Below, in pieces: positions 17,799 to 64,000 of a stretch of 64,000 nucleotides of DNA; within the stretch, counting starts at the first letter, position 1, and each line of letters opens with the position of its first letter. The stretch covers positions 33,170,001-33,234,000 of the forward strand of contig NC_135759.1 in assembly GCF_052425735.1 (NCBI RefSeq), given 5' to 3'. Made by a program: the position numbers and the translations under genes. The stretch comes from Oculina patagonica (lineage: Eukaryota). The notes under the pieces are model-generated. The model had not been told where the DNA came from. It saw only the letters and a list, made by a program, of their open reading frames with translations, and searched no databases.

Positions 17799-18010
17799 TT
17801 ACAGGTAGTCGTTCACGTTCATCGTATCACCAGTCTCTCGACTCATCTCATTGGTTATTGATGGCGCTGGCTTTTCCTGGTCAGCGGCTGTTGGTGGAGA
17901 GTCGAAGACCTGCGATGCTGTTGATGTGTCGGTGGGTGGACTGGGGTCGATTGAGTTGGAGACCTGTGGTTCATCGGCTTGAGGTATGGTAGTCTGTGCA
18001 GCGGGTTGGT
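17799..18010 (-). CDS. Terminal exon of the Arg-rich gene, encoding an acidic Pro/Thr/Ser-rich tail
   Basis: Acceptor (T)8AG at 18011-18020, phase 1, matching the donor at 18471. Translates as DQPAAQTTIPQADEPQVSNSIDPSPPTDTSTASQVFDSPPTAADQEKPAPSITNEMSRETGDTMNVNDYL*. Confidence 0.75.
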
Positions 18011-21000
18011 CTAAAAAAAATAGACGGTAATTTTAAATCAAAAGCCACTCGTAAGCCAGCGAAAGCTTTTCTTTGGAGGGAATAAATAATTGGTAGGTAA
18101 ACAAACCCTTTAATCTACAGAGCCCTAAATTTTTTAGCCTTTGCAAACTGGCGACAATTTGATTTCGAGAATTTTCTCCTGGCGTATGTCTAGTTACTCG
18201 GTAACCACACCGAAAACTGGCACTGCGGGCTCATATTAGTTGTTTAACGAAGAATAGTTTACAGTGCATGTACCACATGCATGAGAACTGCTCAAATTTC
18301 ATGTTTTGAAGACATTGAACAAGCTGCACCACACCGGAAGTACTACTTGTTGGATTTCACTTGAAAACGCGCTGTATAATTTCATCCAAAGACTCAAACG
18401 TTGTATGAGAAGCGCATTTATACTGTGGTAAGGCTTGAATGAGGAGGTAACGAAGATATATCACTACTTACCTCTAAATTTTCGGAGACGAAATTTGCCA
18501 CGACCCTTTCTGCGTATTTTTCTCCACCCCTTTCTTCCTCGCACCTTAGCCTTTCCGTACCGAAGCCGGATTCGTCGAAGACGTCCGCGTAAAACAGCGC
18601 GCAGCTTGTTGCAGCAGTTTCTCACGCGTCGCCACATTCGTCCGTAGCGTATCTGCAAGGTTCCTCCTCTGGATGGCACATACCGCCAGCGCCTTCCGAT
18701 GCGGATTCCAAATCGACGTCCTCGCAGCGTGACCCTTCTTCGCCGTTTTCGATACATTATAGTCCATCTGCCGCGCCATCTCTTGACGTATCTCCACCTG
18801 CCTCCGTACTTGAGTCGCATTTTCGCGTAGGTCTTTCTTCGTCTAAAACCCTTCCATGTCTTTTTGAGCCAGATCCTTGGTCGTCCTCCCCGGAAGCGGA
18901 TTGGTCGTCCTCTTCGCTTGTAGCGCACCATCAAGCGTCCTTTGCGGGGGTAGATCCAGCGTAGTTTACCGCGGATGAACATCTTCAAACGACGAACAAC
19001 ATGTTTAACAAGCTTCCAAGGCCGCGTGCCGTAGCGTACCCATACTCCTCTGCTTCGGATTCTGTGAGTTGAACATAAAAGACGAATTTTAAGGACTGCC
19101 ACCAGTGGCATTCTTTAACTACTTCACGTCCCGTACTGCAGTTTAAAACGCCCTCAGTAACAATTTGAACAGCGGTCCTTACATTTCAGATACTCATTGA
19201 TATTCTTCAACCCCCCACCCCCTCCCCCCCCAACCTTCCCAGAAAAGCGATTTTGTTTAATTTGAGCTCAACATCCTCCGTTTGCTATACAGTAATGGCG
19301 GGTTCAAATGAAGATATAGTTTCTTGTTGAGTCCCAAGTTCGAGGTATTGAGTTGCCTTACATTCTGCGAATTTAGCGGTACATCAAGATAATAAGTCGA
19401 TAATTGCCCCATCCTTGTCACCTTTCTAAAAATATGGCGATAATTTAAAGAAAATTTGATATCGCGTTTTTACAATCGGCCAAGTCCCATGGTTAGCTGA
19501 AGAAATATGAAATGACGTTTGCAGTGCGTCTTGTGGCAGGTACTATATAAAATTAACCAAAAGTAACTAGTAATACGTGACTCGCAGGGCCTCGCGAAGC
19601 TCTGGGTTGGGGAGGGGTGGGGGGTGTTATAAATAAGGAGTGGATTATTTGAAGTTGAACATTTATTGAATTGTACATATTCAATTTTCCACAGTAGGCA
19701 GAAAGATATATTTGTTAGAAATTTCAACGGGCATGGCCGCGACACCCTCGTTCCCAGGGTCTACTCCGCTTTGAAGATGGTGGCTTTTTCTGGTTCGTAA
19801 AGAGGTATAAAGCGTTGGGAAGCGCAGGCTATTTTCAAAATCATCGACAAATTATTGGATAGTCGCATTTTGGACATTTATTTGATGGCATTAAAAAAAA
19901 AAGAAGAAGAACGAACAGCAGGAGGATTCGAAGCCTCCGCCCGCGCGCCCCTGATGGCGATGAAAGATTTATAGCCTGAATAGGCGTTGAGGGAGTATTA
20001 TGTGGAGATCAATGTTATTTTAATCCGAAAAGAAAAACGATAAAAATGAAAGGCTCAGAATTCGAACCCACAAAAAAAAAAGAAAAAAAAAACGTACCCT
20101 AGCCGGATTCGAACCCCCGACCTCAGTTCCGAAGATCTGATTTCAAGTTCGACGCCTTACCATTAGGCCACCAGCGCGCGGCGGACGTGTGACGTCATTT
20201 CCGCCACACACCAAGCTCACAAATATATATATATATATATATAGAAATATATATGACCGTAAACTCCACACGAGATTTCATCCCGCCTGATCCCTTTGAG
20301 GGACAAAATTATACACCCCGCTACGCTCGGCCTTCGGCTCTCGCTTCGCGAGGAATAATGGTAGACCAAGTTAAATTATTTATTTTACTTTTAAATAGCA
20401 AACATAACAACGAGACCCTCCCGGGGGGTGAGGGGGCACGTTCCTTTGAAAATTTCCTTTTTCCCCAAAAGTACTTTGTCGATTTGTGTGGTCCCTGCTC
20501 CCTAAAATATCAGAATTACAGCTTTTGTCCGCGTATTCCCAGCTTATTTTCCTTTTGTTCCCTTGTTCCTGATTATTTTTGGCCATGTTCTCTTGTTACC
20601 TAAGACGCCCGGGAGGGGTTCAACAACTGTGTTAGATTTCCTTACCTAAGGCCATAGTACTTGGTACCAACACGGAACCTTAGTCGCCCTCCTCTCCTTC
20701 GCACTCTTTTGAACTTTCTACCATATCTGAAAACAATTCTGCCATTGCGCTGTCCGTATCGGCGTCGACGTCTTCGTCTTTTACGCCTGAACCTTCGCCA
20801 GTACCGTCTTAGCCTCTTTTGTCGTCTTCTTCTTCTTGCACGGCGACCACGGCGTGTCGAAGGACGTTTCCATTTTTTCTTATAAAAGAATCTTAATTTT
20901 CCATAGATGAATCGGATTGGTCTGGTCCTCCTACCGTAAACGACGCGAAGGGTCTTTCCAACTCGTCTCACGACTCTGTACCGTCCCTTGACACGAACCC

Positions 21001-24000
21001 TTACTCTGTTGACTCGGACTCGGTACCATCTTCTTCCACGGCGATAGCGGAATACGCCGCGTCGGATTCTAGTGAGAAAGAGAAAATCAGGAGGTTTTAG
21101 TCACTTGTTAGATTCTACCAGAAGTTGATAATGCTAATTTTATAGACAACTGACACTATTCGATTCGGAATCTCAAGCCGCCAATATTTTTGATGCCATT
21201 GCATTTGCTGTTAATCAGAGTTAGAGCTGTCCTGACCGACCTAAAGAAAAGTGGTTACAAAGCCAACCCGAGCAGAAACGAGCTGTCAGTGATTGTTCTG
21301 ATTGGCTGAGTTGGCACATTTCAAAAATGGCAAATCATTTTCAAACTTTATCTCGAGTTTTTTGTTGTTGCATGCTTGAGAAACATGCAATGCTTTGAGC
21401 GGAGTTTGGAGTTAAGATGAGCTTAATTAAACTTGTGTAGCCGGCTTGGCACAGCTTCAAGTAGAGGACAATTTTAAAACTCTGACACAAAAATGGCTCT
21501 TTGTTAAGTAGAGAATAACATACTGAAGTGGCTGGTTATGAAGAAGAATTCAATGACCGTTGTATCATGAGGTAGATTGCGAAAATTAAGTTCGCATTGC
21601 TTGTCATTTGCAATTTCATCTTTAGCTTTGTGTAATCTGCTTTAATCAAGGCCAATTACAAAAAGAAACACAATGACAAAAAATGCCGTGAACCAAAAAA
21701 AGCTAATTCTTACCTTAAACTACATGTCCTTCGTCCATAGCGGAAAAAGAACTTTCCACGCCTTCGGTACACTAGTCTGTAACGTCTTCCAACCCGTATA
21801 CGCATTACACCGTAACGCCTTCGCCTGGACCGTCTTCCGCGTCGCCAAGGCCGTCGCCTGGGTCTTACACGTCTGCGCCGTCTGATACGTACCCAACGCC
21901 GTCCTCTACGCGAATAGATTCCTCTTTTCGTGACGCGGATTCCTCTGTACCTCCTTCCAATACGGATCACGGGTTTTCTTCCGCGGATTGTTATCCTTCT
22001 CCATCTTTTCCTCAAGCGCGTGTAGAGGCGGTACTTCTTCGTCGGTACGCGTCGCCAAGCTCTCTTAAAATAGTAATATAACCGGCCGCGTTTGTACCTG
22101 TTGTAAGATGAAACAAAAAACATCAGAGATGAAATAAGAAACTGATAGCAAAGGTAAACAGCGTACATACTATTACTGTAGTAGCCCATGTAGCAAGCGT
22201 TCCCGTACGTCCCGTGCGAATATGCACTGAGTTTTCCCGAATGAACACTGAGTTTTCAACATTTTAGCCACGCGATTATTACTTTAATTTATATTGTTGG
22301 CGTGTAAAATAACTTTTACAAAATCTTTTCCAAAAAACAGGGTTTATCAAAAAACATTTATTAATCAGAAAAAAAAAACAGTGATAGATGTTGACGATTC
22401 ATTGCGCGAGATACGCATTAAATAACGACTAAGCCCACCCCACCACTCCCCAAATAAATTTTGGTAGCCTGTTACAGGCAATTGGTTAGTTGAGGAGCAG
22501 CGCAAAGAACGGCAAGTGAAAAAAAAGACGAGGGTTAGTCGAAGAGACGCCCCACAATACCGTCGTTCTTCGCGCTAATCGCGTTCTTTGAACTTCTCCC
22601 CAGCTAACGGAACGCCTGCAACAGACTAAATTTTGGTTTCCACAGCTACGCAAGACAGAGCTGTTTCTTTTATGTTATTTTCCTAGCTGTATATTACACT
22701 TGTGAGCATCTAATCTATATCGCCAATGTCTCATATAATAAAACGAAAATAAGCAGATTGGTCATGACTGAGGAAGTCTACGAACGACAAACGTGAAAAA
22801 AGTTGGCCGAGATGTCGCTCCTTTGGCTTAAAAAAAGTTTTCCTCGCAACATGCGAGAAAGAATGTCTGAAGAAGCATTTATTATTTTATTGTTTTTGAA
22901 GAGAATGCATTTTAACCAGTAAAGGGAACTCTGTCTTTTCTATTACCTGATTCTCCTTCGGCGACCTCCAAGGCGGAATGTTAATTTACCCTTCCACCTG
23001 AAGATTTTCCTTGTCTTTTTGCGGTAGTAGATCTTGAACGGGCTGCTGCGACGTCTGTATCGCCGTATACGTCTAATTCTGCGCCTGTTTCGTCGTTGAT
23101 AACGCCTAATACGTCGTATCTTTCGCCTGTAGCGTCGGTATTTACGTCTGCGTACGCGGCGACCTCTTCGTCCCTTGCGGCGTCTGTACACGATTCGTCT
23201 CCACTTCCTTCTGATACGATACACTGGCCTTCCGCGTATGAACCTGAATGGTCGGTATTTTCGTCCTATGCGGACTCTGATCTTGCCTCTATATCGTCGT
23301 GTAGAACACCATCGCCGTCTGATGAGGAACTGTGGTCGACGTTTGACGTAGCTCCATCGTCTTCCAACCCGGACTACGATTCTTCCTCTTCGATATCTAG
23401 AAAACACCAGGAGACATAGATTTAACATTTTTATAATCACTGAAAACAAAGGTTGTCAAGTGGTATTTGAAATTATTTGTATTTTGGACCTTTATATTGT
23501 TTTACTTTCTAGGTCCGCCCCGCTTCAGAGGTAAGAGAATGCACTTGAAAATTTGCTTGTGCTTATCTCGTGAACTCTTCTTTAATGCCAAAAATTCTGT
23601 CGTGTTTCACAAAAGCATATATAATATATCCATCAAAGCTAAACCAATCATAAGTGCAAAAGTTACAAACAAAGAAGCGTCAAAAAATTGTGATCTTAAT
23701 TTAACTCTCATGTTACGCATTTGATAACACTTCAGATTTTTTTGGTTTTGTCTCTTTGTTGTATTTTCTTTGCTCCCATGTGAACTGGGTTGCAATTCAA
23801 ACGTTTTCCTTTGGGTGATATTTCTATAGTGCATTGAGATGAAAGAGAGAAATTAACCTTACCTGATAAGTCTAAATCGACGTTTGAAACGCATCACAAA
23901 TCGCCTTCCTCTCCTGTAAATCTTTCTGAATCCTCTTCTGTACCACACACGCATCACGCATCCTCGTCTACCGCGCCTTCCTCTTCGCCTTCGTCGACGT

Positions 24001-27000
24001 CGTCGTCTGATCCTCCTCTTTCGTCGACGTGTCCTTCTTCGTCTTCGCCTTCGTCGTCTTCTTCGTATGGTCCTGCGTGTCCTTGGTCTTCTCCAACGCC
24101 CCTTGTGGTATAAACGAACTCTGCCGCCTATTATGCGCAGCCGACGCCTTCCTTTTCTAAATCGGATGCGCGGTTTGCCACGGTAATATCGCAGTAATCT
24201 CCAACGCCGACCAAAGCGGAATTTTATTGGCTTTCTTCTCAACCATCGCCATCTTCTTCCATATTGGATTCCAATCTTGCCATTGATGTACCTAATGATA
24301 AAGACGTCGTATGTCAGTGCAAGAGGCATTTGGCAAATGGAGGGGGTGCTGCTCCCCGGACTAAAATTTCTCATGCTTGGCCCCTCGACTTTAAAAGGCG
24401 AATTTGTATATGTTCCACAAATCGCTATATAAGTTTAAAAAATAAATTAAAGCTATGACTGCCTTTCTTTCGTTGAAGAACATTGATGACCTTGTAAGCT
24501 CGTTGGCTGGCTACAATTTTTAAAGATATAACTTTTAAAAGCTCTGCCAAGAGTCTTTTACGGAATCAGTTGTTTGACTGATGATTGTGTTTTTTAATTC
24601 CAATCTTAGATACTCATTTCCCAGTGTTTTCAAAAAACAAAGGACAAACTTACTATGCAAAGAATTTTTCGTAACAGATTTTTTTCCAAATTCGTCTTAA
24701 TTTTTTTGTTTTGCAAAGTCGTTCGTCTAATTATTTTTTATGCAAATTATTCTTGTTACCTGACTCTTCTCCATCTACGCTTGATTCGACATCTCAGGTA
24801 TCTACCTCGGCGGTAAACTCGGATCCATCTTCGGTAATATCTAAAACGAAGGATGTTACGTCGTGTTATACGTCGTTTGCGTCGTCGATATCTACGCCGC
24901 CGCCGTCTCACGCGTCGCCTTCGTCGTCGCCTGCGTCTACGTCTCCATATCTTCCTCCGTCTCGGTTTTCGTGGCTTTCTCCTCAATACCACCCAGCGCC
25001 TACCGTAAAGTACCCTGAGTCGTCCTCTCGTTAATCTGAATGGTCTGTATCCACGCCTGAAGCGAAGCACAAGCCTTCCGCGACGTATCCTTATAAATCT
25101 CCATCGCCTATATCCCACGCGGACCTTGAAACGTCGTGTGATTCGACGTATTATGCGTCGTCTTCCTTTGTATGTTACTCGGAAGTATCGTCCTCTATGA
25201 TATCTGGTTAAAGTTCAAGAAAATATTAAATAAGAAAGGTTAAGTCAACACCCTGATGTCCGACGAAGAAAAACAGAACTCACGAGAACTTGAATAATTG
25301 CTTTATAGGGACTATGTCATGGGTATTTGGCAGTTTTTTGGTCTTAACTGTTCTAAAATAAGTGGTAGGCAGTTTTACCAATGGAAAACAATGTCTTTGA
25401 ACATTTTACAAAAAAACAACCTTTTTGGTGGAATAGAAATCAAACTTTTTAAGGCGCGCGGAAACAACTTGAAAACGGTGGCTAACGTTTTCAAATTGCA
25501 ATCCATTTCCTTCCGAGCCATCCGCAGCCAAACGCACTTTAAAACAGTTTTAGTGCTCTAAAAAAGCAATTGTTAATAAAAATGGACCATTATTTTTAGG
25601 TTTCCTACGACACATATATAAATTTGGACTTTTCAAAAATTTGTTAACCTCCGTGACATGTTCACTTTAATTTTCCCAGAGTCAAATAATGCAAATATAA
25701 GAATGGCTTTGAACGGGCTAACATAGCTATTAAGAACATCTTTAAAGTTATGAACGATCTTTTATTCCCGTTCAACCAATTTCAACGAATTTTTTAAAGG
25801 AATTTCAGTTTGTGTTAAAGAGCATTCGACTTACTTGAACGTTATCCATCGACGACCGTAACGCATCCTATAACCACCACGCCATCTCACAATCGACCTC
25901 CAACGCCTGTGGTACTTGAAAAGAAGCACAGGGCGTCTGCGTCGGCGTATGTAGCGCCGTCTACGTCTTCGACGACGTCGCTGCAATCGCCGTCGCCAAC
26001 GTTGTCGTCTTTTGCGCCCTCTTCTTCGTCCATAACGTCCTTTTCGTCTTCTCCTTGGTTTTCTTCTTCTCCTTGGTCTTGGCCTTCGTTTTGGCTTTGG
26101 TTTAACCGTTTCGAAATGTGATGGGATAAGCATCTGCACTAGCCCTCGGCGGATAGAAATCTTCATGGTTTTACGGCCAACTCGGACAGCTAACATTCGC
26201 CTCTTTTGTGTCACCCACCTCCAGCGGCGATGGTAAAGCACTTGCACTTTACCTCTAATCCTGGGCATTCTGTACCACCTTCTTCCTCTACGGATGCTAA
26301 GAACACCACGGCGGCACCTATATAATAATAAAACATTGAATAAACGAATTGACAAGGGAGGGGAGAGTTCCGCCTTGAGTTCCAACCCTTATTCTTTGAT
26401 GTACAAAGAATAGAGAAGACGCGTTAAGAGGTAACCTTTTTTATATACCTTTCATAATAATAGATGGCAACCCTTTCACACACATACAGTTGATCAAAAC
26501 AATGCATTCATTTCCATACCATTTCCTTAAAGCACTTTGATGCTTTAGCCGTTAGATGCGTATTTTATAAGACCTGAATTTAATGACAGTTTACCTTACC
26601 CTTTTCTGTACTTAAACTGGTGAAATAGGGTACTCCTAGCTTTCGGGCAAAGCCTCCTCTTATAGTTTATCATAGGGAGTATACTTCCGGGATTCTGCGC
26701 TGTTGCACATGTCTTGCTTGATAAGTTTGGTTAACTTGGAATTTCGCCCAAAAAATAACACCAATTTAAACTTGTAGGTCGTGTATTCAGTGAAAGCAAA
26801 CAAATAAGGTTGTTTGTATGTTTCTACATATTTATTACTTTTGTTTTTGCCCCTTTTGTTTTCTTTCGCTAGGTTGTTGATTTTTAATTTCTGAAATATT
26901 TTCAATTGAAACTGTTGCGCTTACATATTATAAATTCAAATATAACTTGTAAAATTAAATTTACTTACAATTAAGATGCTAGTCAATCTTAAACTGAGCT

Positions 27001-30000
27001 AAGTGAGTGACTTTTATGTACAAAACAGCTTTTAACGGTGTAGTTTAATTTTATTATTTATGGTTTTGTGTAGAGGGAGTTCAATAATTGATGTTTCCAA
27101 GGAGATCAATGCCGAAAATCAAGAACAACGTAATAGTTGCTTTACCGAGTTCACAACACGCTGTCACAATTAGGCTGGAACAGTAAAAATTGCGTTGTTT
27201 ATATTTACCTTATTATACCGTATCGGAACCTCAGGTAGCGTCCGACTCGATAAGCCTTCATCCATCGCCCTCTGTACCGGAGTCGAAGCACGCTAATGCC
27301 TTTTCGTCTCAAGCGTATTCTTCGTCTCTTTCCATATCGTCTGCGCCTGATTCTTCTTCGTCTAAACCTTCGCATTCGCCTTCGCCTCCTGATCTTTCTT
27401 CTACGCCGTCTGCGTCTTCTTCGCTGTCGCCTCTTTCGTCGCCGGATTCGTTTGATTCTCTTTCGCCGTCTTCGCCTTCGTCGTCGCAGTCTTCTTCTTC
27501 GTCGTCTTATTCTCCTGCGTCGTGACACTCTGCGACGCCTTCGTTTCACGCGGTACCAACGTCTTCGTCGATATATCCTAATGAGTCCCTTTCTAAAGCT
27601 TATTAACCTGGATTTCCTACCATATCGCACGCGGAGTTTTCGTCTGCCCACAGTTATTCTTCGCCATTTATTTCCGTACCTTACTTGAAGGCGTTTGTTG
27701 GGGCGTCTTAGTGTAACCCATCTTCTCTTGCGGAATATCCTCACTTTTCCAAAGCCACATCTTAAAATTATCAATAACAAAAGTTACTTTTAGGGAGTTA
27801 ATATCAAATACAAGTAACATTCTTTGCTCAAGTAGAAAATAGAACTTAACATTCTGAAATCAAGCAACGCAAATTGGCTGAACTATTTAGTAGAGCTTGA
27901 CGTTCTATAATTATTCCCGAGTTGCTGAGTTACCATTTATAACTGACGATGATCTCTGCTAATCAGGTTGAGAGAGTTACATTTAAAATTTAATTATTGC
28001 GTCATAGAGCCTGCAAGGGTTTTTCCCCGAACAGCCGAGATAATCTTATAAGTGACAGATCGCCCATTTCTGAACAGGAAGTAGAAAAAGGACCAAAAGA
28101 CATGCTAAATAGTGAAATAGAAAGGTAAGGTTAGTTAGAGAGTGTCTCAAAAATCCCAAGCAGCAGAAGCCGTTGGATTATGCAGACGTACCGTCGTACC
28201 ACTGTAAATCCTTATTATTTAATTCTTTCAATTTACCTGATTATTCGAGGTCTTCGTCTAAATCGGAAGATCAACCTATTGCGTCTTCTGAAAACACGTC
28301 TCCACTTCTTTCCGAAATAGATTCTTACTACACTTCGTCGCCGTCGCTTTCGGATTCTTCGTCTGCGTCGTCGTCGTCTTCTCCTGCGTCTTCTTCTTCG
28401 CCTAACTCGTCGCCTCTTCCTCCTGTTCCTTCTTCTTGCTCGTCGTAACTTTCGTCTTCGCAATCTTATTCTTAACCTTTGTCGTCTCCTTCTCCTTCTC
28501 AGCCGTCTGAGGCGTCTCAAGCGTTTCAGTCGATTCAACCGTCGCCGTCGTGTCAGCCAAAGCCGTCTTCTTTTCCTTGTTCTCCTTAAATATCCTTTCC
28601 TTCGTCGCACTCTTATTCTTCTCCTTCTAATACGCAACCTAAATCGTCCTCGGCGGATCGACACCTTTCTGTAACGTTTTCTTATGCGTACCACAAATTT
28701 ACGGCGTCTGTAAACAACTCGTCTCCATCGTCTACCATAGCGCATCTTCATACGATTTTTACGTCGAAGTTTGAACCATCTTCGCCTGTATCCCACACTC
28801 CATCGGCCGCGACGACATCTGCAAACGAAAAAAGGGATACACACTATGAGAAGCTTAATTTAATTTGAGAGCAACGTATTAAGTTAAGTTACTCTTAACA
28901 CTTAGAATTTTTTTTCAGTTTTAAAGCTACATATTTTTTTAACTCCACAGAAAATATCCAAACATTAGTCAAGCGGTTTACATAGACTTGCAAACTGGTC
29001 AAAACACGGGCAATAGACGAATCAGGAGGTTTTAAAAGATTAATTACTTTTTTTTTTTTAGATCTTAAAATACGGTTTGAGTATCTAAAAGGTGAAGAAA
29101 ATTAGCACAGGGAAAGTGAATTCGAGGAAAAGCTGCGTTTGACATTACAGAAATCACCGAAATGTTACGAGCATTGAAGCCAGCATACAATACCTTTCAC
29201 TGTGAAGTTTGTCTTAAAATAAATGGCCTAAATTATTTGAATACATTCTTTCCACTTCCAGATGACTTTTAGAGCCTCCTTGACATTGTTGGTATACAAG
29301 GTATACAAAAAAGCATACCTTTAAAATTTATATTATAAGAGTTCTGGGCGTATTTTGTTTCAACGACGTTTTTCAGTGGGGTTATTTTCGGGGTAATGGG
29401 GTAGGGGGCACTTGTTATCGGAAGGAATTGTGCATTTAAAGTGTTTGGGTTTATATTTTGGAAGGAATGCCAATTCTCATCTTATTAGCGGAAGGATTTG
29501 GAATTATAATGGGAATTTTATGCTATTCTAGTAAAACTTCTTTTGAAATTCTTCTTTGCTTAAGAAACGTTTTAGCAAGGCTTATAGTTTTTCCAACATT
29601 GTGCGTGGGTTCACAACTTGATCAAAATTCTCTGATATAGACCTTTCACCCGGTTAATAAGAACCCAGTTAAACTATAAAAAAGATGTTCCTACCTAATC
29701 TTTCTTAGTCCTTTCCTGGTTCGGAATCGCAAGTATCCCTTGCGTCGGAAAACTCTTCTCCACTTTCGTCTATACCAGAATCGTAACCTGTATCGACGAC
29801 GTCTTCTTAGTCGTCGTCTTCTTCTTTTTCCTCCTCTCCACACCTTTCTTCTCCTGCGACGTCTCTTTATTCTGCGTCTTATTCGTCGCCTGTACTTCCT
29901 TCTTACCCTTCTTCTACGCCGTCTCCTGCGCCTAAGATATCGTCGTCGTTTTCGTTTAATTCTCCTTCGTCGCCTCCTTATTCGTCGCCGCCGCCTTCTT

Positions 30001-48000: not shown

Positions 48001-48262
48001 CTCATATGTGGTCTTTTTTAAGCGTGCATTAACAACTGAAAAGAAAAACTGGAAAGCCTACACCTGGATACCCTATCAGTCAACTTCACTTTACTTTAGG
48101 GGGTATCTACTGATTTTCCAACGCAGTTATTTTAAAGAGAAGAAATATGTCTTAAAACCCGTAACATGAGAAGCTAGTAATTTTTGGAGGCGGAAAAACA
48201 AGTCTAGATTTGAGAGCAGACGGACGCACAATCACTTTTGGAAACTTTATCGAAACATACAT

Positions 48263-48299
<37 letters not shown>

Positions 48300-48310
48300 A
48301 CGACAGATGC

Positions 48311-48345
<35 letters not shown>

Positions 48346-51300: not shown

Positions 51301-51891
51301 ACCCAGCCCCTCCCCCCTTCATGTGGTCCCTCCCAGTTAAGCTAAAAGACCATTTTTCTGTTAACAGTGAAAATATCTAGGTTACTAGTCCGTCCCAAAG
51401 AAAGGTTCCAAATTCTAAGTTATAAGACTACCCAAAGCCCCTTACGAAGTTGTTTTAGCCCAGGGCCTATGAAACTTCGCCAAGGGTTTATGCAAACGGC
51501 ATTTTACGGTATTATAAAACAAACATGCATGCATTTATTTATCGTGATAATCTAAAAGAAGTCACTGCGAGCATGAGAAATTCCAAAAGAGTTTTTTTGA
51601 GTTTATCTGAGAGGATTGGAAGATTCCTAAGTAAAACAAATAAAGGAATCGTCTTGGCACGTAAGGATTCCCGGTTGAGGTTCAAGTCTGTCCTGATCGC
51701 ATTTTTGTAAAATATTCCAATATTGAAAAACCACAATTGATGAGAATTTTCCTCTAAAAGTTGTAGTACTCTATTTTATGCTAAGATGTTAAAACTATTT
51801 AAAATATTGCCTGCCAGCTAAGAAATGATGCGTTTTGTGACGCAGTTTTCACTTGAGTGTCGAAAGTAAATTGCGTTTGCTTTGGTTTTGC

Positions 51892-51924
<33 letters not shown>

Positions 51925-53503
51925 GCGCCACTTTCTCAGCCAATCAGAAGTAAAACTAAAACCAATCATGACGCGCTCGCGCATGTTTTCCCGCGCTTCG
52001 TGCCGGCTACTTGTATTTGCTTCGAGTTTTGATTGGTTTACTGGATTGTCTGTGTTCTTTGTGATCGGCCAGAGTAATTACTTTGGTTTTGGTTTTACGA
52101 CACTCAAGTGAAATCTGCTCTAATAGTCACTACTTATGAATACCTATTCAATTTCTCCTTACCTCGTCTAGTTGGCCTTCTGTATCGGAGACGCCTTCCT
52201 CTACGCCACTTCCCGCGCCAACGAATTTGTCCACGTCTTCCTTTCCTCCTCACCGAAAGTCTTCGTCCCTTGTATTTTGTAAACCATGAGAATCGACGAG
52301 TTACAGGCCGGAACTTGCGCCCGATTTTCACAAAGAAACGATTTCCGCGACGCTTCACTCCCCTGAAACGTTTGCCAAGACGTACTTGGAAGGTTTTCGG
52401 GTTTCGACGGAGCTGTCTCAAACGCTTCTTGTAACGCAGATACCACCGTCGTCCTTTATGACGAACGCGACGCCATCTTCGTTTCAGATATATTTTTAAT
52501 ATCCTTCCTCGGATTCGCATTCGACGCCACTTGCCCAAGAATTTAAATCTTAGACGTCTGCCAATCTTGCGAAGCACTCGATAACGTTTCCCGACTCTCA
52601 CACGATAGCTAGGCCTTCCTCGTCTGAGTTTTAGGAATTTTCTTCTGAAGAATATTCTGGGCCGCCTTCGTCCTTATAAAAAAAGAATAAGTTTAATTGA
52701 AAAATTAATGACGTTACATCATATATCGGCCAGAGTACATATAAATGACATAAATTGGTCTTTTTCAGTTTCCTTGGTAATCCATTTTCACAAAATACCA
52801 ACAATAATACGTATGAATAAAATGTTAAAGGGACTATGTCACGGGGATTTCGCAGATTTTTGGTCTAAACTGATCTGATATAAGTGGTAGGCAACTTAAC
52901 CCATGAAAAACATCATCTTTGAACATTTAAGTGAAGATATAACCTTCATTTGGGGATAGAAATCCAACTTCAGCTTTTAAAATCGATTTTTTTAAGGCGC
53001 GTGGAAACAAAGTAGTATGTAAGTAGTATGTACAAACTTGAAAGCGTTAGGTAACGTTTTCAAATTGCAACCCATTTCCATCCGAGCCATCCGCAGCCAA
53101 ACATGCTTTTGAATAGTTTTGTGCTCTAATATAGCAATTGTTCATGAAAATAGACCATTATTTTAAAGTTGCCTCGACACAAATATAAATTTTGGCTGTT
53201 CAAAAATCTGTTAAAATCCGTGACATAGTCCCTTTAAGTTGCCTTGTTCATAAGTTGTCGTGTTATTACATCTAGGGAAGGGGCGGAGTCAATAGAGAGA
53301 GAGGGGGTATAAAACATAAATTTCATAGGGGGCCTTTAGAAGGGGGCTTAGTATATGTCACTACAAATGAAATGGAGTGATCAATTCCTTTTGCTACATT
53401 GTTTAAAAGTGAAAACTATCGACCACTTACTTCGCCTCCTTGTGTACGTTCTTCGTCGCACTGCAAACAAAGATGTAAAAGTCCTTAGTTAACCTTCGTG
53501 GAC

Positions 53504-53534
<31 letters not shown>

Positions 53535-56500
53535 CGGAGGGACGAATTAATTGATTGCACGACTGACTGACTGACTGACTGACTGACGGCTATTTTCCAC
53601 TGATGAAGGGACAGAAGTCCCGAAACGTCTGGATTTATTTACAAAAATTAGCGCATAAACGAAACTCTANNNNNNNNNNNNNNNNNNNNNNNNNNNNNNN
53701 NNNNNNNNNNNNNNNNNNNNNNNNNNNNNNNNNNNNNNNNNNNNNNNNNNNNNNNNNNNNNNNNNNNNNNNNNNNNNNNNNNNNNNNNNNNNNNNNNNNN
53801 NNNNNNNNNNNNNNNNNNNNNNNNNNNNNNNNNNNNNNNNNNNNNNNNNNNNNNNNNNNNNTACTGGCTGACTGGCTGACTGACTGACTGGCTGGCTGAC
53901 TGACTGAATGAATGACCAGGTGGTTTTTCAACCATCAATATCCAGAAAACAATCGTGCTTCGGCTTGCATGCGGTTTTGCTAAGTGTTGTGATTGCTTCA
54001 TTGCAATAACTTTTACTTTGTGATTCTTGCGTTGGATTCCTTTGTTTTCGTTTTGTTTATTGCCGTTATTGGAGAAAACGCTTTAAAGTACAGAACCACT
54101 GTATGTTTATTCTTTAAATTTAAAATCTGGAGGTGGTCTGCTCCATCATTTGCTCTTTTGCGTCAGTTATAGCCAGTCATTTTATCAACCGAGAAAAAAG
54201 CTTTGTGCTAATTTTATTAAAACGTTGTCACTTCACTCTAAAATTACACATTTTTAATCCTAGAAACGGAAACATGACTGAGTGCACGCCTATGAAAAGG
54301 AGACAGGTGGGAGGGGTCCCCGCTACATAGCTTTGACTCGGATTAAGTTTTAAGAAAACCACTTACGTCTCATTCGTTTTCGTCTTCTGTAGCGTATCCT
54401 TCGTCTGGACAATTTTCCTTTGAACCGGAATTTGAAGAACTTTCTTCTTCCACGTCGCACTCGTCTGACAGTAATACGCCTTCCTCGGTACTTGAAGTAA
54501 CGAGAACGCCTGAATGTGAATCTCACTTTACGACGTTTGTAAGTGATGTAAAACCTGCGTCCGCGTCGTGTAACCTTCCTGTAGCTACGCCTGACGCGTA
54601 TCATAAACGTCCGCGTAGTTACCCATCGTCGTCCATAGCGCACCATCCATCTCCTTCCGCGTTGGATAACGCGGCATGTTCTTCTTCCAATGCGTACCAC
54701 CCAACGGCGTCCGCGGCGTATCGGCCGATACCATCGCCTTCGGAAGTACAGCTTCACTCTTGATGTCAATCGACCGATGCGCAATGTACGGCGTCCCCAT
54801 CTGAACCTTATCACACGTCGCCCGCGTCTTATACGGCGGACTCGTTTTCTGAATCGGATCTTTCTTCTTCGGTAGCCTGATAAAGAAAAGAGACATTAGG
54901 CACTACTTATGAACTAAGTAAGAGGGCATCATAAGAAAAACATCAGGCACTTACAAACAGAGTCTGAGGGCCTTATAGAGAAAAACTTTATGTGTTTAAT
55001 ATCCCTCATCAGGCTTGCCGATTATCTACCAGGCTTATCGATATTTGTGTTATGTAAACCGTTACCTTCACATCTTAACGCTGGTAAAAAAATAAGCTGA
55101 AATACTTACGTCTTCGACGTCGCCTTCTTCGTCGTCTTCGTCGACGGCCTGCAAATCGAGACATTTTGTTAAATAAACATAATTGGCGCAGTTGTACTTA
55201 TGATATTCTACTAAAGGACTCGATCTGCCGAGGATCATTTTCAAGTTCAGGAAACCCATTGAAATATACTGTCTAGTAACAGCCAATAGGCACTAGCCCC
55301 TGGAGTCACGTGACTTACTTTAGTCGAAGATTCAAGCGAGCATTGCAACTTCCTCGAGGAAGTTTCAATTGAATTTCCTTGTATCTGGTGCAAACTGCTA
55401 GTTAATATTGGAACGTTGTGCCTTAACCAAAACTTTTCACGGGAAAGAATATCCGATTTGGTTTTTAACCCAGAAATCTCCATTCCATTTAGCGTTCCGT
55501 TCCGCCATTCTTGGTTATTTCCCATCCCCCTTCCCCCACCAAAAGAAGTACGCTTAATAAAAATGTTAACACTCTGATGTCAGGGTCGAATAACTGCTAT
55601 AAGCATGATTCTTTTACCAAATTATTGCCTGCGAACAGGCTCCCGAGTGGGGCAGGGCGAAATCAAATACTTCGCTCGCCCTTCTCGGCTCGCTTCACTC
55701 GCTGATTTATTTTACGCCCATCTCCACCTGGGAGCCTGTTCGCAGGCTAACCAATTTCGAAATTTAATGTTAAACACTTACGCCTTGCTTTTCTTCCACG
55801 TCTTCCATATCGCCCTAGAAAAATAACATTCACGTGATTGAATATAAAGTATCTTGTTGCATGGTTCAAACCATTGATAACAACCATCTTGTCACTGACT
55901 GCATTCAAGATCGACAATGAATCAAACTTATTTTGTTTTTTTACATTATTTGGTCATGTTTTTATCAAAAACTGAATTTAGTCTAGCAGTGAAATTTTCT
56001 AATGTTGTCAAAAAAGACAAGATTTAGATAAAGTTAACCGAGATATTTTCTTGTTTGAAAAATTTCCAATGTTACTAGTTTTCATGGCAATGTGCAAAAA
56101 GCTAATAACCACACAGCCATACTCTTGTTGGCCGTTGTTCGTGTTTGCCTATCGATAAGAAACTCTTCGGCGCATAACCTTCTTCATAAGCCCGGCCACT
56201 AATAATATCATGTAATAAAATAGAAAAAAAGGAGCGATAAATCCCCAAGAAAACATTTTCTCTACTTACGCCTTCGACGCCTTCGTCGCCTTCGTCGTCT
56301 TCGACCTGAGACAAAATGTAACAAGATGTTATTAGTTGGTTAATTTATGGCAACTCTTCCATATGTGTGACGATGCTCTAATTATGGGTTAGAGACTGTT
56401 GTTGACAAATACACGCACGCGCTGGCCGCACAATGAACGAGAAATGTTCAATACTGCGCGAGGCGTAGCCGAGTGCAGTATTGAAAATTTCGAGTTCATT

Positions 56501-59500: not shown

Positions 59501-62500
59501 GTCAATTCACTTTTCCCCACAGTATGTCAATGCAACAACAATGACATTAAAAAAGACTGATAAGATGTTACGTATACTTCATATTTAAATCAACTCACGT
59601 CTGATACGGATCCTCCTCTTTTTACCATAACGACCCTTCCTGAACAATCGTACGCCTCTCCTGCCAGTCAGCTTCGCTCTTACTCGCTTTCCACGGATGC
59701 GTATGCTGCATCGAACACGGCGACGTACACGCCTCCATCGCTTCTTTCGCCTCAGGTACCAAGTCTTCCTTCGCCTCCTGATTCGTATTCTTCGTCTTCT
59801 TAATCTCAAAGTTAGTCTTACACGTTTTATTCTCCTCCACCTTCGTTTTCTTTTTACAAACCACTTTCGACGGATTCTTCTGAGTCTGCACCATCTTCTT
59901 TTGATACGGACTCGCCATCGCCTGCCACGACGTATTATTCTTCTGTATTTTCCCCGGAGGTAAATTCTTATTTTTCGCCTAAACCTACGGATAGGTTTCT
60001 TTCGACGTCCGAAGAAGTATCTCCTTCTTATTATTACACGCCGTCGTTTGCCTTTGATGCGGATATATCTCTTTCCTGTATTAACCAAGAATACATTTCT
60101 TAACTATAATTGTTTATCTAAAGAAAAGAGTAAAGGAGACAGGTTTGGAAAAGAATAGCTTGTGCAGGCTAAATTGTTAGTAAACTGTTATGCGTGTCAA
60201 CAATTGATTACAGTCAACTTTCGCCTTGCGGACACCCCGCTATTGCGGACTCTCGCTATTGCGGACGACATCCAGATCCCGGGCAAAAGAGGTTTGACTG
60301 GAAATGACTCTCGCTATTTCGGACTCTCGCTGTAGCGGACACTAAACAAAGGCCTTGTGTTAAAGGAAATTCAATGCAAAGACGGCTTGGATTGATTTAT
60401 ACCCGAGAGAACTTGAGCATGGAATTAATTCTCCTAAGGGTACAATAAGGGCACTTTTTTTTTCGATACAGTTTTGTTTTTGTTTTCAGGAATTGGAAAA
60501 TGTATTGTTACTTACGTCTTCGTCGTCTTACTCTTCTGCCACGCCTTCCACCTGAAACCAAATAAAAACAAAATCTCATGAGCCGAAAAACTAGAAATAT
60601 GCACCTACTTGGAAGAAAATAAAGTACGCAGACAAATTGAAGAAGATGTTCTGAAGCAAAGAAGATACCCACGAGAAAAAACAGCAGGTTCCGTCATTCA
60701 AACCGCATTCTTTTTATCAACTAGCTAAACGTCTGGTCATCTCGGCGACCGCTTCATTCATCAGTGTTCATACGATATTATTTTGGTGGCCCACGCATTT
60801 TGGGTATCGAAGATCCGTACGAAAATGTACTTCGCTTTGCTTTAGTTACAGCTGTCTGTAAGCTGCAACGTTGCAGATCATTGTATACTTACGCCGTCTT
60901 CGTCTTCGTCGTCGACGTCGTCGCCTTTCGTCGTCGTCGTCGTCTTCGCCTTCTTCGTCTTCGTTTTCGTCTTCGGCCTACAGAAAGATAAACCAAAATC
61001 GATGAGAATGTTTCTTTGTGTGAATAGCATCTCTGTACGGTTGTGCGTATAAAGGTGTGATCGATAGAAAACTCGCAGTACTAAAGAATACCAAATTTCA
61101 AGTGTACAAGAAACAACGAATAAAAGCCACTGAAAAAAGATATCGCACTGTAAAGCAAAGCATGCAGTTTATAAATCTAACAGGAAGTTAATAAAGTTGT
61201 CTTCATGAAGAATTGAAACATTCTCTACTAAAAACTTTAAAACTGCGAGCCTTTGGCTGTTCGAACTACAGCCTTCGAAGGGTAAAAATATAAAATAACA
61301 ATGGGTGAGAAAAAATTTAAATATAAAAATTCTGAATGGAAATGACCATTTGTTAAAAAGGATATTACATTGTCCGGGGAGTAGATGGTAATACTATTCC
61401 GCGTTAGGAATTGTGTGCCAAGATTCAAGGACCTTTCGTATACGAAAACCTCTTTTGTCAATAAGTTTTATGCAGAATGTTTTTTCGCCCTGGTTTTTAC
61501 CCATCAAAGTTTGTAGATCGAACAGCCTAAAGCTCGTCATTTTTAAGGTTTTAGGCACACAACGTTTTAGAATTCTTCATCATGTTTCATCTTGGTTGTT
61601 TTCGGAAACGATACCATCCTTCACATCTTCGCTCTACCCCTTTACTTGCAACAACAGAAACATTAACTGTTGGTTGTTATATTATGGAGCGCGCTTCGAA
61701 CACAAGGAGATGTTGTATTTTATCCTTGTTCCTGGCGGTAACGCTGAATGAAACATATATTTTAATAAAAGCTTATTTCTTACCAGAGATTGCAAATCTG
61801 CCGTCTCCTCAATTGTAAGCAAGTACTGTACAGAAAAAAAAAATAGTTGTCTCTTTACCTTTTACGCGGCGTTTCCTCCCATATCGCACACGCCTGCCTC
61901 TCGACCACTTTCGTTGGAATCTAATCTGGAACCGCCTTCCTCTTCTCCTTACTACAAGTTTTCGTCCACTATAACGCATGTAATAAAATCGTCGACGTCT
62001 TACAGAGATCCATCTCTTACCGAGCCGAATATAATTTCTCTTTCCTCGACGTTTCACGTATCTCCATTTTCGAAGGAACCGTATTTGGTACTTAGACGTT
62101 CTGCTGAAGACAGGCCACTTTCGGCCGCGATAGATGACGCGGTACACCCGACCGTACCGTCTTACGCGGAGCCACACCCGACCGTATTTCAAGTACCAAA
62201 TGCCGCGTCTACGTTTTAATGGTCTCCAACCTCTCAAGAAGTACACTCGGGATCGTCTTCCACGGCGTCGGATGCGGTAGCGTCGTTTTCTGTAACGAAC
62301 GTACCATCGCCTTCTCCCTGATCTCACGCGTCGGCGTTTACCGCGGAACAGAAGTCTGCGACCACGCCATCCTAGGGAGTTAAAACAATTTCTTGTTAAA
62401 TTTCACGTGTGCTGTGGTTCAACCTTGGATTGGACAGGCTCTTTCTTGCATAGTATATTAAATAAGAGACATCTTTATCCGCCGTAATTTTGCATTTATT

Positions 62501-64000
62501 TTCATTGTAAAGAAAACAAATCATTTGAATATCATTAAAACACGCGTTGAGATCATTTAAAATATAGATATTAAACGAAAACAATCCGATTGCAGTAACA
62601 ACAAACCCTTTACGATGATGAGATTCAAAGTTACAGGTCTTCAAAGTAACTGATGTAAAAAAGCCAAACTTTGTCTTTGAACGATTTTACGAAGAGTGTA
62701 AAAAAAACTCGAGCCAAAGTGTTCACTCTGACCAATTATAAAGGACCCAGACAGTCCAGTGAACCCAATCAAACCGGCCTTGAATCGAATACATGTAGCC
62801 GGCAGGAAGCGCGGGGAGACGTGCGTGAGCGAGTCATGATTGGTTTTGCTTTTACGTCCTATCAATTAAAAGTGATGGGAAGTTTTTCAAAAAAATAATA
62901 AGCGTAGTAGTGCAAAACCAAAGGAAACACGAATTACAATTTACATTTTACGTTCAAGTGCAAATCGCTCTATCAGACAAGAAATTACTCTGGTACTCTG
63001 GTAATAGCTCCTTTGATTCAGTAAAACCGATTTCAGAAAAAGTGTCAAAAAAGTATTTCCAAAATTCATGCAAATACTTGTTTAAGAATTGGTCCATTCA
63101 GGAAGTCAGCGTAACTTAGATATATATTTCATTAAAAACCGACTGATTGTCAATTTTGTGAAGATTGATCATTATGTCAAGAGCGCTTTTAAACACTGAG
63201 AAAGACGGGAAAATCGTGACCATTTGGTAGCCCACCGGCTGATTCTTGCCCAGTCGTCTTTTAAGAGAAAATTTTAAGAAGCATAAATAGGGGATGAGTC
63301 AGAGTCGTACCGAGCATTTTAAGTAATTACATTATTAAAAGCCGGTTTCCACTGTTTAGAGACATAAGGTACACCTACTTCTTTTGTATCGCCTTATTCG
63401 ACGTCTCCTTCTTCTACGCTTTATTCTACGCCGTCTGCGTCGTCGTCTTCGTCGTCTTCGACGCCGTCTTCTGCGTTTGCTTATTCTTCTTCCTCTCCTT
63501 CCTTTAAAAAAAAAATAACCGATTAATGCAGAAAATAAATTTTAAAAACAATTTCCTCACCCATATTATTGCATTCCATATTTAGTAGCCCGGTAATAAT
63601 CACAAAGCCGTACCTTCTCTGTTTTCTGAGCAAAGCCCATCCAAGTTATCTGAAGTACCAAGCTTTACCAAATACCGGTACCATTGTCAATGTTACATAA
63701 TGTATTGGGGAAGGGAGAACGAAATTTTCATAGAAAATAAGGGAGACCAAGAAAGAACCAGATGTATTGTTCCCGATTTAAGGTGACCATCGTAAAAGTT
63801 TAAAGGCGCTTAAAGCCTTATTCAAGAAAAATCACAGTAGACCGCTTAGTCCGAGATGTTAGCATTTGTTAGCAAGTTGGTATCAGGCGAGCGGGAAATT
63901 GAAATACGTTAGATCATTCATTAAAATGTGCTGTATATCTAAATAGGTAAAAATGAAATCGTTCTACTTACGTCTTCGTCTTCGATAGCGCCGTCGTCGT
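17799..64000 (-). CDS. Giant multi-exon arginine-rich modular protein (>5,400 aa, N-terminus outside window), function unknown
   Basis: 43 exons with canonical splice sites on the - strand, in transcription order: 63972->64000 (partial), 63379-63501, 61859-62371, 60893-60977, 60516-60551, 59599-60075, 58511-58573, 58289-58324, 57278-57754, 56270-56305, 55782-55814, 55110-55148, 54367-54876, 53431-53460, 52163-52672, 51004-51253, 49406-49879, 48525-49031, 46609-47082, 45535-46056, 44700-45143, 42712-43173, 41846-42337, 40835-41383, 39328-39840, 38399-38878, 36922-37368, 35800-36270, 34936-35415, 33474-33992, 32303-32863, 31144-31761, 29695-30270, 28237-28818, 27209-27760, 25835-26317, 24760-25203, 23863-24291, 22947-23396, 21714-22097, 20646-21068, 18472-19061, 17799-18010 (stop TAA). 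Phases match at every junction except the 85-nt exon 60893-60977. I found no in-frame stops. Confidence 0.88.
20094..20177 (-). pseudogene. tRNA-like sequence (tRNA pseudogene or SINE head) inside an intronic repeat
   Basis: On the - strand: GCGCTGGTGGCCTAATGGTAAGGCG (A box) ... GGGGGTTCGAATCC (B box); anticodon and acceptor stems pair poorly. Confidence 0.4.
20646..49879 (-). CDS. Array of 25 symmetric phase-2/phase-2 module exons (384-618 nt) of the Arg-rich gene
   Basis: Every exon length is a multiple of 3. Nearly all junctions split an Arg codon (AG|A or AG|G). Shared layout: aromatic/cationic segment, then a poly-Arg tract, then a C-V-(M/L)-R-F-R-Y-x-R-R-W-R-x-V-Y-R-R-G-like segment. 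Confidence 0.88.
25308..25670. mobile_element. Diverged copy of the MITE at 52829-53233
   Basis: AGGGACTATGTCA ... CCGTGACATGTTCACTTTAA; shared internal CCGAGCCATCCGCAGCCAAAC. Confidence 0.7.
34088..34432. mobile_element. PIF/Harbinger-like MITE
   Basis: GGTTGGTTCTCATG ... CATGAGAACCAGCC flanked by TTA, with internal CGATCG-rich subrepeats. Confidence 0.6.
47128..47432 (+). mobile_element. tRNA-derived SINE, full length with 14-bp TSD
   Basis: GGGAGGCGCGGTGGCCTAATGGTTAG (A box), GAGTTCGAGCCC (B box), TTGGGCAAGACACTTTACTC...CCACCCAGGTGTATAAATGGGTACC; TSD TTGTTATTGAATAA at 47113-47126 and 47433-47446. Confidence 0.9.
48265..48366. repeat. (GACA)n microsatellite
   Basis: Imperfect GACA/GATA tetranucleotide run. 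Confidence 0.9.
51840..52121. mobile_element. MITE (GCAGTTTTCACTTGAGTGTCG TIR); a diverged inverted relative lies near 62677-62972
   Basis: GCAGTTTTCACTTGAGTGTCG ... CGACACTCAAGTGAAATCTGC; internal AACCAATCATGACGCGCTCGCGCA matches the reverse complement near 62822-62845. Confidence 0.75.
52163..64000 (-). CDS. Phase-1 zone of the Arg-rich gene: 477-513 nt domain exons interleaved with short (30-123 nt) Arg-rich exons
   Basis: Large exons 61859-62371, 59599-60075, 57278-57754, 54367-54876, 52163-52672. Short exons 63379-63501, 60893-60977, 60516-60551, 58511-58573, 58289-58324, 56270-56305, 55782-55814, 55110-55148, 53431-53460, flanked by AG acceptors and mostly GTAAGT donors. Confidence 0.8.
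52829..53233. mobile_element. Kolobok-like MITE (AGGGACTATGTCACGG TIR, TTAA TSD)
   Basis: TTAA|AGGGACTATGTCACGG ... CCGTGACATAGTCCCT|TTAA. Confidence 0.85.
53670..53861. other. Assembly gap (192 N) flanked by (GGAT)n and (GACT)n microsatellites
   Basis: Run of N; simple repeats at ~53500-53587 and ~53864-53915. Confidence 0.99.
57125..61625. repeat. Tandem segmental duplication (~57125-59222 and ~59445-61625), each copy holding one domain exon and two short exons
   Basis: Near-identical 477-nt exons (57278-57754, 59599-60075), 36-nt micro-exons and intron sequence, with copy-specific indels. Confidence 0.92.
57890..58063. mobile_element. Tc1/mariner-like MITE (TA|CAGTCAAC...GTTGACCG|TA); truncated duplicate near 60211-60345
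   Basis: Terminal CAGTCAAC/GTTGACCG with TA flanks; internal CGCTATTGCGGAC repeats. Confidence 0.7.

Follow-up and report, generated by a model that had tools for sequence, protein, structure and literature searches.

The DNA analysed here is a window of 64,000 nucleotides (nt) from Oculina patagonica (contig NC_135759.1, positions 33170001-33234000), in which a long arginine-rich gene lies on the minus strand. The locus encodes a conserved, expressed and extremely cationic modular protein with ILEI domains. An additional 80 kb of upstream sequence was included, and coordinates above 64,000 continue the window numbering upstream. On this scale the gene covers approximately 89 kb, from an ATG near 106,785 to a TAA at 17,799, and reaches approximately 43 kb past the window end. 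The whole-gene model, obtained by dynamic programming with seven exons corrected by hand, has 87 exons and 27,006 nt of coding sequence (CDS), open in frame from ATG to TAA, for a protein of 9,001 residues; it is an approximate model, and its length is approximate because the number of micro-exons is uncertain. The model protein contains 46.0% Arg, 9.1% Lys, 62 Cys and 287 Trp in its 9,001 residues and has a net charge of approximately +4,900. With Ser at 1.8%, it does not show the Arg-Ser dipeptide repeats of SR and SRRM-type proteins. An earlier note on this DNA had described a giant, hyper-cationic modular protein of more than 5,400 residues and at least 43 exons that continued past 64000. 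The description and the continuation both stand, and the size is revised to approximately 9,000 residues and 87 exons.

Within the window, between 18.4 and 63.5 kb, the minus strand carries approximately 35 long stop-free segments with 30-54% Arg and several short Arg-rich ones. A pyrimidine tract and AG precede each long segment, and nearly all of the long segments end in AG/GTAAG, with the stop codon overlapping the donor itself. As the earlier note had proposed, these separate reading frames and micro-exons have canonical GT-AG splice sites and, with one exception described below, matching phases. The refined model gives 42 exons and 16,349 nt of CDS in the window, close to the 16.4 kb claimed, and the part encoded before the last exon (5,235 residues, 48.7% Arg) has one Glu and zero Asp, in agreement with the single acidic residue that had been noticed. 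Two phase classes of exons are present, 2-2 at 18-51 kb and 1-1 at 52-64 kb, with the exon at 51253-51004 as the converter. In the 5' two-thirds of the gene, hairpin exons of approximately 170 residues without poly-Arg alternate with dedicated poly-Arg micro-exons, whereas in the 3' third hairpin units and poly-Arg are fused into single exons, an arrangement that fits intron loss and subsequent exon duplication. Inside the array, no terminal exon carrying a stop was found. A single start exon with a signal peptide lies ahead of it, and the second such set belongs to a separate upstream paralogue. The locus is thus very probably one real, single gene. A purine-rich repeat artefact with accidental open reading frames (ORFs) was ruled out by the splicing, by the ratios of nonsynonymous to synonymous substitution rates (dN/dS) and by position-specific conservation, and a Ser/Pro-rich reading of the plus strand was ruled out by the splice sites, which are on the minus strand.

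Transcription of the 3' end was examined in sequencing runs that we took to be RNA, four of which were mapped as contigs onto 17.5-23.5 kb. Six such runs contain 35-43% of the 31-mers of this region, which equals its exonic share. Exon-only contigs were obtained from X15, X18 and X20, which come from three studies under three coral labels, and their joints at 18010>18472, 19061>20646, 21068>21714 and 22094>22944 (22097>22947 when the cut is moved by +3) are all GT..AG on the minus strand and match the four predicted boundaries exactly. The contigs stop at 23396-23398, where their loose ends extend into the following exon. P0016 and P0009, ORFs from other corals in which the penultimate exon reads straight into the acidic tail, independently support the last junction. 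Read depth over the 3' exons is high in X15 and nil in X16, indicating that expression differs between samples. The structure and expression of the 3' part of the gene are therefore directly observed; the last four junctions were confirmed in three runs, and those upstream of 23.4 kb we infer. Farther upstream, the RNA-like runs also contain 7-14% of the words of 94.0-101.3 kb, approximately the exonic share there.

The exons confirmed in this way begin with the last coding exon (17799..18010), which encodes an acidic Ser/Thr/Pro/Asp-rich tail and ends at TAA 17799-17801, with the 3' untranslated region below 17799. The earlier note had placed the end of the CDS at this TAA, and both the stop and the acidic character of the exon are borne out by the frame, the stop, the joint 18010>18472 in three runs and the two spliced ORFs from other corals. 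The penultimate exon (18472..19061) has RNA joints on both sides and encodes a 196-residue beta-hairpin array without poly-Arg. Three module exons of the 3' type and phase 2-2 follow upstream: 20646..21068 (joints 19061>20646 and 21068>21714; dN/dS 0.23 against the orthologue L011), 21714..22097 (joints 21068>21714 and 22094/22097>22944/22947) and 22947..23396 (joint at 22947; dN/dS 0.13). In all four RNA-like runs, k-mer depth is very high over a repeat at 19500-20500, in the intron between 19061 and 20646, and reaches approximately 72,000 in X18; this includes X16, which lacks the exons of the Arg-rich gene. The repeat is probably a transposable element that is either highly expressed or very abundant, and an Rfam search of the intronic repeat at 19.1-20.65 kb gave no match.

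Upstream of these exons, a block of approximately 20-22 predicted 3'-type module exons occupies 23863..51253 on the minus strand. All have canonical sites and matching phases, their junctions being predictions, and four of them gave dN/dS values of 0.14-0.28. The exons lie at 23863-24291, 24760-25203, 25835-26317, 27209-27760, 28237-28818, 29695-30270, 31144-31761, 32303-32863, 33474-33992, 34936-35415, 35800-36270, 36922-37368, 38399-38878, 39328-39840, 40835-41383, 41846-42337, 42712-43173, 44700-45143, 45535-46056, 46609-47082, 48525-49031 and 49406-49879, with a doubtful micro-exon at 40606-40635 and the phase-changing exon, predicted from sites and phases, at 51004-51253. From there to the window end the predicted exons, all on the minus strand, are hairpin exons of the 5' type and micro-exons. 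Hairpin exons are placed by sites and phases at 52163..52672 (phase 1-1, without poly-Arg), 54367..54876 (matched by homologous ORFs of other coral assemblies at 56-83% identity) and 61859..62371 (homologues P0052 and P0053). Between them lie a poly-basic micro-exon of 30 nt at 53431..53460 (acceptor TTTGCAG/, donor /GTAAGT, in phase) and three poly-Arg micro-exons predicted from sites and phases at 55110-55196, 55782-55814 and 56270-56305. Two further poly-Arg micro-exons are at 63379-63501 and 63972-64010, the second of which crosses the window end as the gene goes on upstream.

Two places in this 5'-type region required particular attention. An assembly gap (53670..53861) falls in the intron between exons 54367-54876 and 53431-53460, 506 nt below the donor at 54367 and 209 nt above the acceptor at 53460. 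The frame is independent of the gap because the flanking exons have compatible phases, and a hidden micro-exon inside it is possible. A (CAGT)n microsatellite abuts the upstream edge of the gap, and a second (CAGT)n run lies approximately 80 nt downstream. Intronic microsatellites were also seen near 48.3 kb (TGTC/CTGT type) and around the gap, as (TGGA)n, (GACT)n and (ACTG)n (48204-48623, 53499-53916); such microsatellites probably caused the gap. The other place is a recent tandem duplication (57278-61100, or from approximately 56300), with a unit of approximately 2.4 kb at 87-97% identity that holds one hairpin exon (57278-57754, 59599-60075) and two poly-Arg micro-exons (58289-58324, 58511-58573, 60516-60551 and the 85-nt 60893-60977). 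The last of these differs from its sister copy 58573-58511 by a 22-nt insertion and is out of frame, so that the one phase exception listed in the earlier note is real. Its inclusion leads to a premature stop and its skipping keeps the frame.

The Arg-rich sequence has a regular internal structure. Its hydrophobic, aromatic, Trp and Gly positions follow an 18-residue period, within which a sub-period of 9 is seen. A 3'-type module (approximately 430-620 nt) consists of four hairpin units, a poly-Arg/Lys tract of 30-110 residues, one Cys and two hairpin units. In an alignment of 22 of these modules, two Trp are nearly invariant, the poly-Arg/Lys tract is variable, most modules have the Cys in a C-V-M/L-R context and a hairpin pair closes the module. 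The modules are 38-52% identical to one another and are conserved position by position between species. The penultimate exon has an Asn-Cys-Cys motif, and its Trp, Gly, Leu-Arg-Gly and Cys-Cys positions are invariant across homologues down to 37% identity. AlphaFold2 modelled this exon as approximately 20 short strands with two-residue turns at a predicted local distance difference test score (pLDDT) of 73, and a typical module as hairpins, a long helix over the basic tract and hairpins again (pLDDT 79), in which the poly-Arg helix is not to be trusted. From these models the Arg/aromatic modules are predicted to be beta-hairpin meanders of 100-190 continuous residues. A Pfam search with five Arg-rich exons, the acidic tails and the N-terminal ILEI exons returned nothing but ILEI, the Arg-rich exons having no match at E up to 1. 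An ESM Atlas feature search gave no usable match, Foldseek against the PDB found no significant fold (best E 0.015, fascin and OspA) and neither did a VIA fold alignment (best Z 3.5). Choline-binding, glucan-binding YG and cell-wall-binding repeats and the single-layer sheets of OspA are likewise built of hairpin repeats of approximately 18-20 residues with conserved Gly and aromatic positions, and they occur among the weak fold matches; neither a Pfam match nor a significant fold match ties the coral modules to them (E >0.007, Z <=3.5), and the resemblance suggested by the models is one of fold type only.

The 5' exons were found by comparing the upstream regions of the long gene, of a short paralogue at 112.4-124.1 kb and of the orthologue of this paralogue in another species, L012. 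The start exon comprises an ATG and seven codons, reading MRVFFLL, MRFLFLL and MKSIFLL in the long gene, the paralogue and the other species, respectively, each followed by CT/GTAAGT, and a conserved stretch lies directly upstream of it. All three copies of the second exon have 167 nt, free of insertions and deletions, with an excess of third-position changes (e.g. 14/11/22) and an invariant RVKR. The third exon is 45-48 nt long, with an in-frame 3-nt indel between copies. Joined in phase, the exons read MRVFFLLL-YGVAIVTS, an acidic Ser-rich stretch and RVKR, and then continue into the first Arg-rich exon. The N-terminus is accordingly predicted, as is its junction, to consist of a signal peptide, an acidic propeptide and an RVKR convertase site. 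A signal peptide and a propeptide ending in Lys-Arg are the pre-pro features of cnidarian secretory and cnidocyst proteins, and this N-terminus is kept in the paralogue and in the other species. A scan for start exons that assumed a phase-1 donor revealed nothing convincing. Within the first intron, an element of 50 nt at 105,403-105,452 (GTTGGCTTTATTTTCG...TGCAGGTTATT) is conserved in the long gene, the paralogue and the other species. It was rejected as a coding exon, having an in-frame stop and no ATG, and is probably a regulatory or intronic element or an alternative non-coding exon.

Three ILEI/FAM3 domains (Pfam PF15711), each spread over three exons, were identified at approximately 98.3-96.2, 95.3-94.1 and 90.0-87.7 kb, in the N-terminal third of the protein (residues 340-1,300 of the model, approximately). 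The exon at 96223-96462 scored 30.5 bits against the Pfam gathering cut-off of 27 (E = 5e-7, profile positions 42-89), and the exon preceding it matches profile positions 13-42; the other two copies scored 16.8 and 17.7 bits with the C-terminal exon alone. The earlier note had assigned the protein to no recognisable family. No named homologue was found, in keeping with that view, and these domains upstream of the window are the part of the protein to which it does not apply. The ILEI domain occurs in secreted or lumenal proteins such as FAM3 and POMGNT1. Taken together, the features of the N-terminal region make it likely that the Arg-rich protein is secreted, and the signal peptide, the propeptide and the ILEI domains render a nuclear, protamine-like role unlikely.

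Orthologous exons are present in other coral assemblies with their order kept; those of L011 are approximately 50% identical. Selection was assessed by the Nei-Gojobori method in the Arg frame for 20 exon comparisons, and composition bias makes the resulting dN/dS figures rough. Values were 0.13-0.28 in six exons against L011 (dS was saturated in two more), 0.14-0.28 in six paralogue exons against L012 and 0.21-0.33 between the long gene and the short paralogue. All are well below 1 and show the gene to be under purifying selection, so that its conservation as a coding gene, which the earlier note had assumed, is supported by the full range of 0.13-0.33.

The short paralogue (loci L007-L009) is on the minus strand at extended coordinates 112,364-124,103 (33282364-33294103) and encodes approximately 1,200 residues. 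It shares the signal-peptide, propeptide and third exons of the long gene, followed by approximately seven Arg-rich exons with 70-83% identity to the final exons of that gene, and it closes into an ORF. The paralogue is conserved in another coral assembly as L012, which is approximately 80% identical to it. Its acidic tail is longer than that of the long gene and consists of repeated Asp-Pro-Ser and Thr-Asp-Thr-Ser units. Only the long gene and the short paralogue carry the penultimate-exon domain in this genome, giving two copies, and homologues of this exon span 37-99% identity. In protein libraries of 5.8 and 1.8 billion entries the matches were limited to unnamed ORFs of coral-like assemblies and two more distant transcripts; these libraries are poor in eukaryotic gene models, and the match count says little about taxonomic spread. 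The two distant homologues, L013 (SRR13272317; 357 residues) and L014 (SRR16156407; 389 residues), are 37-39% identical; in each, one uninterrupted ORF contains a poly-Arg module together with the Asn-Cys-Cys hairpin domain, and the C-terminus is basic instead of acidic. They may mark the family outside reef corals, and no description of an Arg-rich protein was found in the literature on these two runs. The only real match in the AlphaFold DB is an uncharacterised protein, A0A3M6UD74 (889 residues), with 57% identity to the domain of the penultimate exon over 180 residues (E = 7e-17). In size it would fit the short paralogue, it carries no name or function, and its accession series suggests Pocillopora damicornis.

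Two other features lie beside these genes. Between the long gene and the paralogue, at 108,750-109,600, is a satellite with a 12-nt period that reads (FVRS)n on the minus strand and (TNER)n on the plus strand and has long open frames in several frames. On the plus strand at 3880-12000 are ORF fragments resembling a SET-domain methyltransferase of the Rubisco-LSMT type (SETD3- or SETD4-like, as judged by eye), which would belong to an unrelated neighbour gene.

Several known systems share single properties with the coral protein. Proteins as rich in Arg as this one are normally tiny and nuclear, and to our knowledge no natural protein of this size near 46% Arg has been described. Protamines and other sperm nuclear basic proteins have a comparably high Arg content, poly-Arg runs and an occasional Cys, and both they and the coral protein presumably bind polyanions by charge. 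They are, however, tens of residues long (to approximately 200), nuclear, and lack a signal peptide and folded repeats, whereas the coral proteins have approximately 9,000 and, for the paralogue, 1,200 residues and a conserved, signal-like N-terminus with a predicted acidic propeptide and RVKR. Pfam and protein library searches revealed no sequence relationship to protamines. The Pc proteins of the sandcastle worm and the mussel foot proteins are secreted, repetitive, strongly basic and rich in aromatic residues and Gly, and their adhesion relies on charge, cation-pi interactions and coacervation with polyanions. By analogy the coral protein may act in a similar way, although these proteins are of ordinary size and based on Lys, His and DOPA (3,4-dihydroxyphenylalanine), and the coral protein is Arg-based, far larger, non-homologous and only putatively adhesive. 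Eosinophil major basic protein (MBP; precursor proMBP) is an Arg-rich secretory granule protein with an acidic pro-piece and is the cause of the eosin staining of these granules, which parallels the acidic propeptide of the coral protein and the eosinophilic organelles of corals. MBP has a 117-residue C-type lectin fold with approximately 15% Arg and no sequence or fold similarity to the coral protein, whose propeptide is far too short to neutralise it. FAM3 proteins are small, secreted and single-domain, whereas the coral ILEI domains, enriched in Arg, form part of a giant polycation, an architecture of which we found no description.

The disulfide-stabilised hairpin antimicrobial peptides of the tachyplesin, protegrin and arenicin type have 17-25 residues with two to four bridging Cys, unlike the approximately one Cys per 150-residue module and the long meanders of the coral protein. 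In multi-copy antimicrobial precursors, tandem copies of one peptide are separated by a conserved spacer with processing sites; the poly-basic tracts of the coral protein could be such sites, but its modules are only 38-52% identical and keep their positions between species. A literature search revealed no description of an Arg-rich coral, cnidocyte or nematocyst protein, and the recent cnidocyte and matrisome papers examined made no mention of arginine or ILEI. With hairpin modules that fit no known family, and with uncharacterised or fragmentary ORFs as the sole counterparts in public data, this would appear to be a new kind of protein, judged from its sequence.

We tentatively favour, at somewhat less than even confidence, the interpretation of the protein as a structural or adhesive polycation of the secretory pathway. 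It would be made as a pre-pro-protein and enter that pathway with, in order, a signal peptide, a short acidic propeptide to RVKR, approximately 9,000 residues in which hairpin arrays and poly-Arg/Lys tracts alternate, and a small acidic tail; the three ILEI/FAM3 domains would sit in the N-terminal third, with approximately one Cys per module. Such a protein could be stored as a polyelectrolyte in a regulated secretory organelle. After release, its thousands of guanidinium groups and its Trp, Tyr and Phe faces would make multivalent charge and cation-pi contacts with anionic surfaces or polymers, the single cysteines could form cross-links and the ILEI domains might contact glycans. Both this adhesive mechanism and the cell type are what we infer. 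With regard to the latter, eosin binds basic protein, and eosin staining reveals abundant basic protein. In the scleractinian Lophelia pertusa, the tubule content of spirocysts is highly eosinophilic; spiroblasts lay it down in fragments, and once discharged it turns into microfibrillae that adhere to glass (PMC5363355). Because this eosinophilic, glass-adhering content suggests abundant basic protein, the spirocyst is a candidate site, and it is possible, though we hold it only as a speculative proposal, that the long gene and its short paralogue encode the eosinophilic adhesive of spirocysts, a disulfide-cross-linkable poly-arginine glue of beta-hairpin ribbons. No published identification of the eosinophilic spirocyst protein was found in the literature. 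Acidophilic granular gland cells, which also occur in Lophelia pertusa (PMC5363355), are the other candidate site.

Several observations weigh against this interpretation. The assignment to spirocysts or gland cells is a hypothesis from histology alone. R-x-K/R-R motifs occur throughout the protein, so that many furin-type convertase cuts are expected in the secretory pathway, which favours a polyprotein unless folding protects the protein. The gene could then be a precursor of cationic antimicrobial or membrane-active peptides, as the earlier note had also considered, with convertases and carboxypeptidases cutting the poly-basic tracts, themselves potential convertase sites, to free Arg/Trp hairpins from gland or epithelial cells. 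The signal peptide, acidic propeptide and RVKR match the layout of cnidarian secreted-peptide precursors, as in damicornin and AmAMP1, and the amphipathic strands of alternating R and hydrophobic residues, with Gly turns and Trp, resemble Arg/Trp antimicrobial peptides. Against this, the modules are conserved by position between species rather than being copies of one peptide with a fixed spacer, the strands are predicted to form the continuous meanders described above, and dibasic sites inside every hairpin mean that cleavage would give no defined peptides. Such a precursor would also leave the three ILEI domains and the conserved Cys of each module without a role, and we know of no antimicrobial precursor near this size; we consider it unlikely, although it is the main rival and compatible with the secretory features. 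These features are also compatible with the adhesive or coacervate-forming partner proposed in the earlier note. A variant in which the protein is not itself adhesive but condenses a co-packed polyanion, as a complex coacervate or a charge-neutralised store, is in our view quite unlikely. The candidate partners are nematocyst poly-gamma-glutamate or chondroitin, sulfated mucins and acidic skeletal matrix proteins. The very high net charge, the near absence of acidic residues and the predicted secretion would suit it, and the ILEI domains may bind glycans by analogy with the stem domain of POMGNT1. On the other hand, neutralisation of poly-gamma-glutamate would reduce the osmotic pressure behind nematocyst discharge, and no partner for the protein was identified.

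The remaining alternatives concern the gene model and the cell compartment. RNA confirms the last four junctions only, and the start, ILEI and middle exons rest on splice-site phases and conservation; homology searches of a word index with three exons returned genomic-contig ORFs and no spliced ORFs for the middle and 5' parts. The micro-exon at 60893-60977 would truncate the protein if spliced in. The locus might accordingly consist of two or more adjacent genes, or of a gene truncated near 60.9 kb, in which case the giant protein would never be made as modelled. We regard this as very unlikely: every other exon is phase-compatible, one start exon with a signal peptide lies ahead of an array in which no internal terminal exon was found, skipping the single micro-exon restores the frame, and the 3' exons, the five that RNA joins, are expressed and under purifying selection. 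Least probable is the first candidate of the earlier note, a giant protamine-like sperm chromatin protein or precursor. The extreme Arg content and scattered Cys are in its favour, and a transcript that is nil in X16 and very high in X15 could reflect seasonal gametogenesis, but the predicted signal peptide, propeptide and convertase site and the three ILEI domains point to the secretory pathway and the size exceeds that of protamines by two orders of magnitude. The cnidarian sperm basic proteins described so far are, moreover, H1-like and Lys-rich. A nitrogen store, which had also been proposed, has no specific support.

A secreted polycation of approximately 9,000 residues would pose a puzzle for the ribosomes, the translocon and the convertase-rich compartments that have to handle thousands of basic residues in succession, and it raises the questions of which polyanion or surface it meets and why it is kept under purifying selection in corals. 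The findings also explain why it would have escaped automated gene models and tryptic proteomics. If the protein is indeed the basic content of spirocysts or acidophilic gland granules, a structure so far known from staining alone would acquire a molecular identity, and the protein could offer a template for Arg-based underwater adhesives and coacervates. As the glue of spirocysts, it would represent a new class both of giant secreted polycation and of biological adhesive.

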